Origin: Amoeboaphelidium protococcarum X5
Lineage: Eukaryota > Fungi > Aphelidiomycota
DNA length: 64,000 bases
Direction: 5' to 3'
NCBI GenBank assembly: GCA_023515725.1
Contig: JALDTO010000164.1
Coordinates: forward strand, 62,001 to 126,000
Numbering within the stretch: the first letter of the stretch is position 1; every line of letters starts with the position of its first letter. This document shows, in pieces, positions 41,311 to 50,406 of the stretch. The notes under the pieces are model-generated. The model saw nothing but the letters and a program-made list of their open reading frames with translations, made no database searches and was not told where the DNA came from. The translations under genes and the position numbers were made by a program.

Positions 41311-42149
41311 TCATCGACGCGATTTGAATCCACCATGTGCAGACGAGCCAAACCCGCGACCATTTCTATAGCTGCGTGTAATGGAACTCAGGCGCCAAGC
41401 ATCCTTGTCTTCAAACTTCTTATGCAAAGGCTCAATCTTGTCACCTTTACGCTTTCTTCCCAGCTCATGTCCACTCAGAGTTTTGTAGTAATTAGGCGCC
41501 AATTCGATAAGCCACTTGGGATCGACGAGGGACACTTCGCGCATATATTCCTTAGTTGTGAGAACGAGATCATGATAGATTACCCACTGCGGCTACCGCT
41601 AAAACAGAGAGGAGGATGGATGCATGAATACAACGGTGTTATCAGTCAGTTTCTTGTATCCTTCAGTCATGTGCTTCTTGGCAACATTTCTAAAGAATCC
41701 AGCAGTGATCGCTTTGCGGACTTTAGTAAAATCCTTGCCACAGGACTGAATCTAAATTTTGCACCGATCCATAATCTCAATCAACTGGCGGCGAACATCT
41801 TGAGCCTTTTGCATAGTCTTGTACTGAATATAATTATCAAAACACCATTTATCCTAGAATCCAGCCGCTTTCCAGCTGTTGTATACACAGAGTAATGTCA
41901 GATGATCTCCCTCCGGTTAGCTGAATTTCTACTTTTTCTAATCGGCCTCAGATAGCTTGTCTTTGGGTCGATAAAATACATTCTACACGCTCAGCATAGC
42001 GATTATTTTTAAAATCTCTTCTGTGCACTAAAACATTTCACTGGCAATCAACGTTTTGGACAGCTGCGGCTCAAGAGGAAATTCGGCCATTCTACGACCG
42101 ATCGGAGTGATGAAGCCTTCTTCGTCCAGAGCCCCAATAGAGTATAATA
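41311..42149 (-). pseudogene. PRP22: PRP22/DHX8 DEAH-box splicing helicase, 3' part, downstream of the copia insertion
   Basis: [30 protein letters not shown]...EGDHLTLL...HPSS...[15 protein letters not shown] to TGA. Confidence 0.95.
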
Positions 42150-42269
42150 TGTTAAAAACGTAATAAGTAGAAAATAAATAATAACCAATTATTGTTATTT
42201 CTACTTCACTTGAAGAAGTAGTTTGATCATTTTTCACTGACGTTGTACGTGTTTCGTCACAACCTAACA
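42150..42269 (-). repeat. 3' LTR (120 bp)
   Basis: Identical by eye to 47375-47494. Preceded on the minus strand by a short purine-rich tract AGGCGAAAG (candidate PPT). Confidence 0.97.
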
Positions 42270-42295: not shown

Positions 42296-45200
42296 TCAAC
42301 AGCGACTTTAATCTAGACCCAATCTGGCAACATGTCTTCGGAATAGCGTAGGAGTCAGCGGCTTGGTTAGAACATCAGCAGTCTGCTCCTACGTATTCAC
42401 ATATTCAAACATAACGCGGCCGCTTTCAGTTAACTCCCTGACAAAATGATACTTAACTTCGATATGCTTAGTTCTGCTAAACTTCTCCGGATTCTTTGTA
42501 ATGGCAATACAACTCTGGTTGTCTTCCATAACTTTAAGTGGATGAACCTTCACTCTATCAACAGTTTCTTCATCAGCTAACAACCTTAGCCCATCAACCA
42601 CAATATCGAGCCCTACTTCATTCAGAATCTCCCTAAACCAGCACAGCTCTTAACACACAGCAGCAGCGGCATAGTACTCTGCTTCAGTGCTACTTAACGC
42701 AACTGCACTTTACAACTTGGACTTCCAAGAGATACTAGCGCCACACATTTGAATTACATAGCCGGTGGTAGACCGCCTTCCCTCTTAATCGTTAGCAAAG
42801 TCTGCATCGGCATAAGCAATGGGAAGCAGATCTTTCTTCCCATCGAAAATCAAAACAAGATCTTTACTACCAGCCAAGTATCGCAGGACCCTTCTGACCA
42901 TACTGTAGTGTTCCATCTTAGGATTCGACAGATATTTACTTAAGTAACCAACAACGAATGCAATGTCGGGACGCGTACCCACCATAAGATACATCAATGA
43001 ACCAATCAACGCTCTATAAGAAACATCCAAGAAACCATCATCAACATCAACGTTAATCGCCTAAAGACTCATGGGTGTTGAGACTCCAACACAGTTGTCC
43101 GCTTCAAAGCGAGTAAGAACACGTTCCAGGTAAGTGCGTTGATCTAATTAGATAATCTTCTAAGGCATTGACCTCTTGATCCGAATCCCAACAATATGCT
43201 CAGCAGGACCTAAATCTTTCATGTCAAAACGCTGAGCCAGCTGTGCTATGACGGCATCAATATCTGATTAGCGCTAAGTAATTAAAAGAATATCATCGAC
43301 ATAGAGCACTATCATAAATAATCTACCGTGCTTGCGCCTGATGTAAAGACAATTGTCGGCATGGCTTCTCTTGAAACCAATCTCGACAAGAAACTAATGA
43401 ATTGTATTGTTCCAGCATTTCGGTGCTTATTTGAGCCCATAAAGACTTCTCAGTAGACGCAGTATCTGACCTTCAAATTCGGTACCCACAGGCCCTTTCA
43501 TGTAAATCTCCTCATTCAGTATTCCGTTTAAAAACGCAGTATTTACATCCATTTAATGGATTATCATATCATACTTTGCAGCTATAGCAATTACCATCCT
43601 AATCGTGTTAAACTTAGCCACCGGAGCAAATGTCTCGGTGTAATCAACATCCTTCACTTGACGGAATCCTTAAATAACTAATCGAGCCTTGAATCTCTCC
43701 ACCTACCCACTGGAATCAAGCTTGATCTTAAAAACCCATTTGCAAGGGAGCGCTTTAAAGCCTTATGGCAGAATGGACCTTTTCCAAGTCCCATGTTTAA
43801 GAAGACTCCTCAACTCATCCTCCATCGCAGCCTTCCACTGCGGCCATTCTTTAAGTAACATAGCCTCTGCAACGGTCTTAGGAGTCACAGGTATGTCTGA
43901 GCCACAATAGATTTCATTGAATAGACAAGTCACATCATACGGCATCTCTTCAACCTCAAGCTTAGAGAGATAGCATTGAACAAAGTCATCAATTAGTTCG
44001 TTTATCTTCACCTGAGACGAGAGTGCCTTGATATCAGCCCGTGTGTTCATGTCGATTTTGAGTTCTTCAACCAGGCGTTTGAGTCTCTTATTCACCAGAG
44101 CGTCTTCCTCATCCTCTTGCTCTTCACTTTGCTCTAAAGGATTAGACTCTGCACTGATATTACGCAGGCGACGACTGATTCGCTTACCACCAACTTTAAG
44201 ACACGCAGATCTCTGTTATATAGCTTACACATTCGTCGCGTCTGCATCATCCCTCACATTCACATTAGGCTCTTAATCATTCACATTCACATTAGGCTCT
44301 TAATCATTCGCATTCACATTAAGATCTTGAACATTCACATTCACATTCTCTTACGGCACATTCGAGCCCGATACTTACACATTCACTTAAGACACATCAC
44401 TTTAAGTGTTCACATAAACATCATCTACCAAACCGGTAGGCATAACATCAACATCATCACTTCCGCCCACCTCCATCTGAGGATTTGGCGTATGTTAATC
44501 ATTGTCATGCACATTGGTCTAATCTACATGTCTTTCGCCCAAAGTGGAGCGCATATTATCAGAGCTTTCGCCGCATGAAGAACGGGATTAATCTGGATTC
44601 TATGTCAAGTCACAAGAGGTGCTGCTTTCGCCCAACATCAAACCAGATTCCGACTATGTGTCTGAGAGATCTGGAGGATAGAACGATTCATACATCAAGT
44701 CAAACTCCTAGGCACCATAAGTCTAACGTGCAACCTCGTGAAAGACGACTTCATCAAAAGGAACATCGAGTAATGAATTTTAAGCAGTGAGAATCTGATA
44801 ACCGCTTGGTCTATACCCAATGAAATGACCTTTAGCAGTACGACTAGAGAATTTGAATTTATCAGCTCTTGCTTCTTTAGGTACGAAGTACGTAACGGGA
44901 CAGCCCCAAATTCTCAAATGATTGTAGCGCGGTTAGCTCCCATGGTATACTTCGTACGGTGTTATTTACAGTTATCCGGCGGCATTACGAGCACTTGTTA
45001 AAACTCTATTCGCCACATATACATAAGCCTGCACTGCAAGGCCCCAATATCTTCTGGGCAACCCACTGGATAGTAACATACTGCATACACCTTCTACAAT
45101 CCGACGATTATATCTTTCAGCTACTCCGTTCAACTAAGGTGTATATCTAGGCACCATATCTAAAAGGATTCCATAATCACGACAGAATCCTTTAAGATCT

Positions 45201-47326
45201 TAGTTCACAAACTCAGTACCTTAGTCGCATTTTAGAGTGTTGATCTTCTCACCAGTTTCCACGTTCATTCTAGCGTTAAGCACTTAAATGGCCGAGGATG
45301 CTTAATCTTTGCTGTACAACAATTCCGCCCATGCATAGCCTGAGTAGTCATCTACTATAGTCAAGATGTAGGATTACTTCTGAGGTGTTTGAATGCCAAT
45401 GGGACCGATGAGATCCGCATGAAGCATATAAAGAACACGAGGTGTCCGTAGAGGCATCTCTTTCTTGTCCCACCGAGAATCTTTCCGTTTAGAAAAATGA
45501 GCGCGAGTAGCTTTCGCTTGCAGACAGGGATCACAGTGATCTATTTAATCAAAGTCGATGTCATGGCTAACTTATCCTAACATATCTAGTCACACCATTT
45601 TCTTCACGATTCCCTTGCTAGGATGTCCGAGACGTTCGTGGATGGTCTTAGCATTGATACTTGCTGACAGACTGACTACATCTGCCTCGCTCTTACTTTG
45701 ATCATCAGACTTGTGACGCTTCGGATCACTGCCTTCGGATTGATGAGACTTGGGCCAGATCACCTTGATGTCCATAACATACAATCCATCAAAACGTCCA
45801 GAACTCATTTTCTAACCAGTTGCAATACATTCTCCATTTTGGTAGATTTTCTTCATGCCTTCCCCAAATACCACATACATTTTCTTGTCATCAACCGGCC
45901 CAACAGGGAATAAATTAAAGGAGAAGCTAGGAGAGTACAAGACGTCCTCAACAGTGGCAATGGTTAGTTTACCTTGGTCATTACGCATTTCAAACTATAT
46001 GCTGCCTCTACCTACCACGGTAACCAAAGTGCTATTATCAATAGTGGTGCAAACAGCAGAACAATCTTGGTAATTGTACAACCAGTCTTTTCTACACGTA
46101 ACAAATTTGTTGCAACCTCCATCACTTAACCAGACATTCTGGTTGTCTAGAGCAGTAGAGTCAATAGCCGCATTGAGGGTCATGACGTGAGTCACTAGAG
46201 ACACAAAGTTAGCGTCTTCAGCACTTTGAGCAACATTAGCACTGAACTTGACTTTCTTTATGCCATGACTTTAATCTTTGTCTCTAGGTATTAAGTGAGC
46301 AGGACGTTTGTGCTCAGCACCTCCACCAGGCCAGTAGCATTCTTCAGCAGTATGGTTCGCTTTCTTGCAGTTAGTGCAGTACTTGCTACTACTCCCGCCT
46401 GTAGAGAATTACTGCTTGCGATTACCTTTAAACGAAGCTCCTTACTTAACCATTGCATTAGCTTACACAGATTCAGTAGACTCACCACCAGATTAACGTA
46501 AGGCTTGTATCTGGCGCTATAGCTCAATACTAGTCAGAGTGTCCATCAGATCCGCGGTAGTCAGAGGCTTCTTTAAGTAAGTGGAAACGTTGTCCAACGC
46601 GCGGATATCGCCATACGTTGGGCCCTACGGTAGCTTATCTAAGAACTTCTAGGCTAGTTTTTACTCCGAAATAGAAGTATCTCCACACTTCTACATCTCC
46701 TCAACAATCGTTCTCATCGCAAATAGAAGTTTCACTGAATGATTGAACTGTTGGAAGGTGAGACTTTCCAATTGTTCAGCAAGCAGGCCAGAGTGCTTAG
46801 GAGACTTAGCGTTCCAATATGCCTCCACTGCTTATACTGCTTCATACGCGTACTTGCACTTGATGATGATATATCTCAGCTGAGGTTCGATGGAATTCTC
46901 GATAATTGCCAGAGCTTTGCTGTTCATTCCCAAAACTTCCGAAATCACCTTATGCTTATCCAGACTTGAAGATCCACCTGAAGATACGGACTGTACAGAG
47001 GACGGGACTACATCCTTTCTAGCTCCACCTTACTTTCCAACGTCACCTCTCTATGCACTACTATCGGGAGCTGCCTGATTAACGGCTGACGCGTCCGTTC
47101 CGACGGAGACGACGCGAGTTTGGCTGGCGCTATCCAGATTAGACAAGAGATTTGCATAATAGTCTTCAACAGAGCCAAGCTTCTTGATCTCTTTGTACAC
47201 CTTCTTACCCAGCACCGCGTCCACCTTCTTCTCTCTGGCTTAAGTGAGTAACGACTTGTGCCAGGCAGTGAAATTAGGGCCGCAAAATATCGTTCCATGA
47301 TACGCATCGTCCTTGCTGCTGTCCAT
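42296..47326 (-). CDS. Copia Gag-Pol polyprotein, 1677 codons, with one internal TGA at 45590-45592
   Basis: Zinc knuckle [14 protein letters not shown]; protease WLSDGGCN; integrase HERLGH...[32 protein letters not shown]; [29 protein letters not shown]; RNase [26 protein letters not shown]. Manual scan found only one in-frame TGA. Confidence 0.93.
44255..44346. repeat. Degenerate 27-bp tandem repeat (CACATTCACATTAGGCTCTTAATCATT) in the IN-RT linker of the copia element
   Basis: Two near-perfect units plus degenerate copies; encodes NDQEPNVNV-like repeats on the minus strand. Confidence 0.75.
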
Positions 47327-47374: not shown

Positions 47375-47494
47375 TGTTAAAAACGTAATAAGTAGAAAAT
47401 AAATAATAACCAATTATTGTTATTTCTACTTCACTTGAAGAAGTAGTTTGATCATTTTTCACTGACGTTGTACGTGTTTCGTCACAACCTAACA
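47375..47494 (-). repeat. 5' LTR (120 bp)
   Basis: Identical by eye to 42150-42269. Confidence 0.97.
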
Positions 47495-50002
<2,508 letters not shown>

Positions 50003-50406
50003 CTCTAATATAAAATCTAAGGTGTGCTTTATTAAAACTTGGAAGAATAAACCAATCGCGCGGCCTCCCTTAGAATTACAGATTGGGGGAGAGAAAGAGA
50101 GAAAGCGCGTGACCGATCTTACGCGCATTAACAGGCTCTATCAAGTCGCTTTGCTTTACGTGTTTTGTCGCTTCGAGGAAAGAATCGCTTTAACCGAAGC
50201 CGCGAAAATTAACCGAAAATCTTTTCGTACTTGTCCATTTGAGTCTTTTGTAAAGCATTAGATAGAAACACAGAACGTAAGATTTGTACTATATTTATCC
50301 TCTGCACTGCCCATTTAACACGTTTTTAATTGCGGAATCTGTGCAGTGCAGTGGTTATTACAGAGGACATCTAATCACCTATTTCGTGCTTGTAGTTGAA
50401 TTTAAA

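Follow-up and report, generated by a model that had tools for sequence, protein, structure and literature searches.

A recently active Ty1/copia retrotransposon of the algal parasite Amoeboaphelidium protococcarum X5, referred to here as family A, carries a single in-frame UGA between the two halves of its integrase zinc finger. This UGA is probably a programmed stop made leaky by its context, through which the element would produce abundant Gag-protease (Gag-PR) and scarce Gag-protease-integrase-reverse transcriptase-RNase H (Gag-PR-IN-RT-RH). Several related copia families of the genome carry a UGA in a like position, and for this reason the stop of family A is most likely a deliberate leaky stop. 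In this single-stop genome each copia family that can be read has one UGA-C, which is located either before the protease (F2, F6, F8 and F14) or after it (A, F1/F4, B/C and F10).

The family A element and its reading frame

The element lies in the window, that is, the whole stretch of 64,000 nucleotides that was analysed (contig JALDTO010000164.1, positions 62,001 to 126,000). It is 5,345 bp long and occupies window positions 47494-42150 on the minus strand. It has the domain order of Ty1/copia elements (Pseudoviridae), PR-IN-RT-RNase H in a single reading direction, and also the TG...CA termini of the LTRs and the 5-bp target-site duplication (TSD) of this group (Table 1). The two LTRs were said in the sequence-only reading to be identical, and they indeed match at every position. 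The frame runs from the ATG at 47326 to the terminal TGA and contains 1,676 sense codons followed by the stop, which is included in the 1,677 codons reported earlier. It holds 42 TAA, 20 TAG and, as had been claimed, exactly one internal TGA (codon 579); the two other frames contain 54 and 81 TGA. On the element strand, window 45584-45595 has the sequence GTG TGA CTA GAT, as first described, and the TGA is the 11th codon past the second His of HxxxxH, so that it does fall between the HH and CC halves of the finger. The region downstream had been called intact, and ORF2 is open over its entire length. The Pol_BBD domain lies entirely upstream of this TGA, and the rve core follows it. In B, F1, F2, F6 and F8, likewise, just one stop interrupts the frame, with conserved coding regions on either side. 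Six-frame searches of the genome against Pfam were more informative than searches with short stop-free pieces, in which Pol_BBD and gag_pre-integrs appeared only below threshold; the gag_pre-integrs match of family A spans one TGA and two TAA.

Table 1. Features of the family A element, in window coordinates
Feature	Position	Strand	Basis or remark
TSD TATTA, 5' side, 5 bp	47495-47499	-	same 5 nt at 42145-42149
5' LTR, 120 bp, TG...CA	47375-47494	-	direct repeat, 100% identical to 3' LTR
ORF1: Gag, protease and HH half of integrase finger; 578 codons, ends at internal TGA	45593-47326	-	code-6 translation
CCHC knuckle in Gag of ORF1	46378-46337	-	
Protease-region beta-barrel, Pfam PF22936 Pol_BBD; active site D-G-G	45881-46132	-	six-frame Pfam search, 55.7 bits
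D-G-G active-site motif	~46126-46118	-	
Integrase N-terminal HHCC zinc finger, Pfam PF13976 gag_pre-integrs, TGA inside	45512-45676	-	38.4 bits
HERLGH, HxxxxH half of finger	45640-45623	-	
Internal stop with 3' context UGA CUA G (TGA = 45592-45590)	45586-45592	-	sequence read
CDPC, CxxC half of finger	45535-45524	-	
ORF2: remaining integrase, RT and RNase H; 1,097 codons without TGA	42299-45589	-	translation
Integrase core (rve)	45433-45137	-	six-frame Pfam search
RVT_2	43789-43070	-	six-frame Pfam search
Terminal stop TGA, then G	42296-42298	-	
3' LTR, 120 bp	42150-42269	-	direct repeat; termini read
TSD TATTA, 3' side	42145-42149	-	match to 47495-47499

All family A copies have D-G-G at the protease active site, where F1, F4 and B have D-S-G. 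The protease of family A may be impaired or atypical, and because of this substitution the family may depend on the protease of a relative.

The insertion sits in a long host ORF on the minus strand (flanks 41311-42149 and 47500-50140). When the element and one copy of the TSD are removed, the flanks join into an in-frame ORF of 1,159 codons. Its C-terminal piece has a match to PF07717 (OB_NTP_bind), a domain with which DEAH-box RNA helicases end. Thus, on this haplotype at least, the element interrupts a helicase-like gene.

Sharing of the stop among family A copies

A 601-nt probe across the genome assembly recovered four copies of family A, all of them 100% identical at the TGA site and differing from each other at just 2 of 5,345 nt. 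TGA-CTAG is therefore common to the copies (4/4), as had been predicted for a genuine stop, and three of these are independent TSD-flanked insertions: the flanks of the window copy and of those on contigs C207 and C314 are unrelated, and each copy has a 5-bp TSD of its own (TATTA, TTACA and ATTCG, respectively). A template with the TGA has thus undergone at least three very recent transpositions. Contig C253 (5,255 nt) consists of family A element sequence only and is probably a collapsed repeat, in which case the true copy number may exceed four. Of the two differences, one is at window 44574, in the variable IN-RT linker of ORF2, where the window copy has G (element strand) and the three other copies have T; the other affects the C314 copy, within its 3' LTR, at the site that corresponds to window 42244.

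The presence of the TGA in all four assembled copies makes an assembly error very unlikely. With four separately assembled copies identical and analogous TGAs in five other families, a sequencing or assembly artefact can be given next to no weight. The private nonsense mutation that the sequence-only reading had offered as its alternative was rejected on the same grounds, namely the TGA in 4/4 copies and the analogous TGAs in five further copia families.

Genetic code of the host

The TAA and TAG codons of family A align with Gln, or with TAA/TAG of other families, about 5-6 times above background. In the window, host ORFs of 1,520, 1,442 and 1,263 codons contain no TGA other than the one that terminates them. 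From these two observations the code is one in which TAA and TAG specify Gln and TGA is the sole stop. It could be argued that UGA is instead a sense codon, either for Trp, as in Condylostoma-type codes, or for selenocysteine, and that the full polyprotein is made every time. Two stop codons have already changed their meaning in this organism, and the positions affected are variable linker residues, which would suit such a decoding. It is nevertheless very improbable, as host ORFs in the window run for up to 1,520 codons without a TGA and then stop at one, and in the elements TGA occurs exactly once per element and solely at gag/PR or PR/IN junctions. The scattered in-frame UGA in ordinary genes that marks a UGA-as-sense code of the Condylostoma or Blastocrithidia type was not found, and a search for a tRNA-Sec gene (RF01852) gave no match in the 23.6-Mb assembly, which is possibly incomplete.

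Stop positions in other copia families

Every copia family with the gag-to-integrase interval covered has exactly one internal TGA. In five further families (F1, F4, B, C and F10) the one in-frame TGA follows the protease and lies in the finger or just before it. In F1 and F4 it is the 4th codon after HxxxxH, in the same finger and 7 codons upstream of the stop of A; in B and C it is the 10th codon after HxxxxH and thus neighbours the codon used by A, the PF13976 matches of both families likewise enclosing a TGA; and in F10 the sequence TGA CTA G is found about 27 codons before the finger. The intact F1 element (C233/C169) has an ORF1 of at least 422 codons, the TGA and an ORF2 of 1,081 codons. 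Family B is represented by five copies, the fifth (contig C133) being cut by the contig end. The four full-length B copies are 99.8-99.98% identical and their homology stops at the element border, which makes them independent insertions. F2, F6, F8 and F14 share with family A the host, the superfamily and a single in-frame UGA-C, but here the stop is upstream of Pol_BBD, at the classical gag/PR junction, and the HHCC finger is uninterrupted.

Families C (contig C154:741841-746939) and F4 (contig C192:900324-905587) are each known from a single degraded copy with several frameshifts and extra TGAs; both still hold the in-finger TGA at the codon used by their intact sister families, B and F1 respectively. 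A local transposon cluster was also observed at contig C264:1502448-1514222, a stretch of 12 kb in which one F2 and two or three F8 elements, and so at least three copia copies, lie next to or within each other.

A maximum-likelihood tree of the copia families was built from RT-RH. It groups A with F1 and F4 as {A,(F1,F4)} (support 90/97), and this group is nested among F2 and F6, which are of the gag/PR type. F7, F8 and F11 form another group (100/100), B and C are joined with support 100/99 at a distance (27-30% identity to A), and F10 stands separately on a long branch. The post-protease stop is thus present in three separated lineages, which requires at least two changes of state. Four codons are used by the post-protease stops, at -27, +4, +10 and +11 relative to the finger. 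In an ungapped alignment of the 29-residue linker, A has GGA where F4 and F1 have TGA, and A has TGA where F4 has CAA and F1 has AAG. As judged from this alignment, the stop in the A/F1/F4 clade has been relocated by 7 codons (+4 vs +11) and not lost. The junction of gag and PR is too divergent for reliable alignment of the F2 and F6 stops with A and F1, and A has sense codons there. Three of the four post-protease positions are in the 29-codon linker and one is in the PR-IN spacer of about 80 codons, numbers too few for any claim of preference. In families with no stop at +4, +10 and +11 these finger positions are variable (K/R/S/G, I/H/F/V and R/K/Q), and hence whatever residue is inserted should be tolerated.

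Selection across the stop

In the pairs F1 and F4, and B and C, TGA is aligned with TGA although synonymous sites are saturated (pS 0.79-0.84). In both pairs pN is 0.32 downstream of the stop and 0.44-0.45 upstream of it, and the purifying selection on the downstream region that had been predicted therefore holds. All five in-finger families (A, F1, F4, B and C) have preserved HxxxxH before the stop as well as CxxC beyond it, and the retention of both finger halves makes sense only if these are joined in one polypeptide. The two pairs thus combine a stop conserved among diverged relatives with constraint downstream of it; the codon used by A is conserved only within a young family, in nearly identical copies whose divergence is too low to show selection or to date the stop.

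It is in this light that family A might be regarded as a non-autonomous lineage, in which the TGA is a fixed nonsense mutation and the RNA is packaged and copied by the proteins of a related autonomous family. The confinement of the +11 TGA to young copies, the low divergence among them and the D-G-G protease motif are all compatible with such a history. On the other hand the nearest relatives, F1 and F4, are split alike only 7 codons away, ORF2 has stayed open over 1,097 codons, the stop stands in the strongest known leaky context (UGA-CUA-G), and there are three fresh insertions. Among the copia families, as far as their regions were covered, none showed an uninterrupted gag-pol, so that no stop-free helper is in sight. 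A non-autonomous family A is thus improbable.

Nucleotide context and RNA structure

The base after the internal stop (+4) is C at 9/9 internal stops in non-degraded contexts: TGA CTA G in A and F10, TGA CTT in F1, F2 and F14, TGA CAA in B and F4, TGA CGC in F6 and TGA CAT in F8. CU follows the stop in five of these and CUAG in two. The lone exception is the heavily degraded copy on contig C154 (TGA AAG). At the TGAs that end the polyproteins, C is found at 0/9, with G, T or A instead. As background in the window, C follows 4/36 long-ORF ends and 17% of all TGAs. If only the clearly independent sites are counted (A, F1/F4, B, F10 and at least one gag/PR site), the chance of C at all of them is ~1e-4. 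UGA-C is a context unfavourable for termination, ideally in the form UGA-CUA-G, which A and F10 have. In Ustilago maydis and in HeLa cells, UGA-CU(A)(G) has been shown to bring about efficient readthrough by itself (PMC4207609).

Minimum free energies compared with those of shuffled sequences revealed no stable RNA structure in the 143 nt from the stop in A (z +1.7), F1 (+0.7) or B (+0.7), and among pseudoknot-free folds a 3' stem-loop of the MuLV or Tca2 type was thus not seen in these three families. In the absence of significant structure after these stops, the short-context mechanism is the most economical reading. The gag/PR-type family F8 (contig C98; L022:1925-2067, minus strand) has a structure of -37 kcal/mol 3' of its UGA (z -2.5; 3/200 shuffles as stable), and its UGA may be a structure-assisted site.

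A model for family A

According to the preferred reading, ribosomes on the full-length element RNA would usually terminate at UGA-CUA-G and release Gag-protease, ending about 10 residues past the HxxxxH half of the finger. From time to time the UGA would be read by a near-cognate tRNA, the usual candidates being those for Trp, Cys or Arg, and translation would continue in frame to Gag-PR-IN-RT-RH, which would be the sole product with a complete HHCC finger. The outcome would be a high ratio of structural protein and protease to integrase and reverse transcriptase. We infer both the readthrough and its efficiency from the anatomy, the sharing, the conservation and the context of the stop and the constraint beyond it.

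Comparison with known systems

In-frame stop suppression sets the Gag:Pol ratio in the gammaretrovirus MuLV (gag-UAG-pol) and in fission-yeast Tj1 (gag-UGA-pol). Both of these have their stop ahead of the protease, and in MuLV a pseudoknot is required as well, whereas in family A the stop follows the protease. Alpharetroviruses (RSV/ASLV) encode PR in the gag frame and separate gag-pro from pol by a -1 frameshift after PR, and Drosophila copia obtains Gag-PR from a spliced 2-kb RNA. Family A would resemble these two in keeping protease at Gag levels and the other enzymes rare. It differs in that they use frameshifting or splicing and a boundary that cuts no folded domain, whereas in A an in-frame readthrough would take place inside the finger. 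The sequence-only reading had called the position of the recoding site unusual; this stands for copia and gypsy elements, where a post-protease site is indeed unusual, but not for retroelements generally, in view of the alpharetroviruses and Drosophila copia.

In the short-context cases (Ustilago maydis, human peroxisomal isoforms and, with UGA-C, Sindbis virus) the stop and the next 1-4 nt are the same as in A. Readthrough adds short C-terminal extensions or viral nsP4 in these cases, and in A it would add an enzyme polyprotein of 1,097 residues. The host of family A is also different in having a release factor that recognises UGA only.

The closest copia precedent is Tca2 of Candida albicans, also a Ty1/copia element, which like family A has gag and pol in one frame with a single UGA to bypass on the full-length RNA (PMC2194720). 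In Tca2 the stop is between gag and protease and is followed by a putative pseudoknot; in A it is after the protease, in the finger, with no detectable 3' structure and with UGA-CUA-G. Pol of Tca2 has been shown to come from the gag-UGA-pol RNA, and the sequence flanking its UGA gave no readthrough in S. cerevisiae reporters, in which a cryptic internal promoter was found (PMC2194720).

The Tca2 results with reporters bring up another model, in which the stop is efficient and IN-RT-RH is made by some other route: an internal promoter or subgenomic RNA, termination-reinitiation, or splicing or editing that removes the UGA. RNA processing controls Gag/Pol in plant copia elements, which use splicing (PMC5580714), and in Drosophila copia, and an in-frame ATG lies 3 codons past the stop of A. 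F1 and B, however, have no nearby downstream ATG, and the frame is always kept across the stop. Such routes would part HxxxxH from CxxC, yet both are conserved in the five in-finger families at saturating divergence, and they give no role to the UGA-C bias (9/9 vs 0/9). It is thus quite unlikely that IN-RT-RH is made independently of readthrough, and leaky termination at the UGA is the better explanation of the arrangement.

Significance

Separating gag from pol by a leaky UGA is a known strategy, and a stop of the gag/PR type is confirmed here for four copia families. What appears to be new is that in at least three lineages the stop follows the protease and sits in the integrase HHCC finger. 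The relocation of the stop from codon to codon and the contrast between internal UGA-C and terminal UGA followed by another base are also new. No description of a post-protease in-finger stop was found in the literature searched, the coverage of which did not extend to a 2003 survey of recoding in LTR elements, and the search found no paper on aphelid retrotransposons. A wider proposal is that all copia lineages here set their protein ratios by leaky termination at UGA-C, and that selection has repeatedly moved the stop between the gag/PR and PR/IN junctions and from codon to codon in the linker between HH and CC, the in-finger position being perhaps advantageous. In this general form it is a tentative and rather doubtful suggestion.

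According to the textbook, copia elements reach an excess of capsid over enzymes by splicing, by frameshifting or by a stop before the protease; in this one small genome no fewer than three lineages have a probably leaky UGA behind the protease and within a folded zinc-binding domain, and the UGA-C context has been preserved although the stop has moved between neighbouring codons. If the reading is true, a stop in the finger puts the protease at Gag-level abundance, and only readthrough can then supply a complete zinc finger and, with it, any activity of the integrase. For annotators it means that such elements should neither be scored as defective nor be split into two genes. Taken together, the families can be compared across two stop positions, four post-protease codons and as many as nine UGA-C contexts, and so form a natural series. 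Such a series is suited for asking how termination efficiency is tuned where the release factor reads only UGA, and it also bears on protease dosage as an evolvable parameter in LTR elements.
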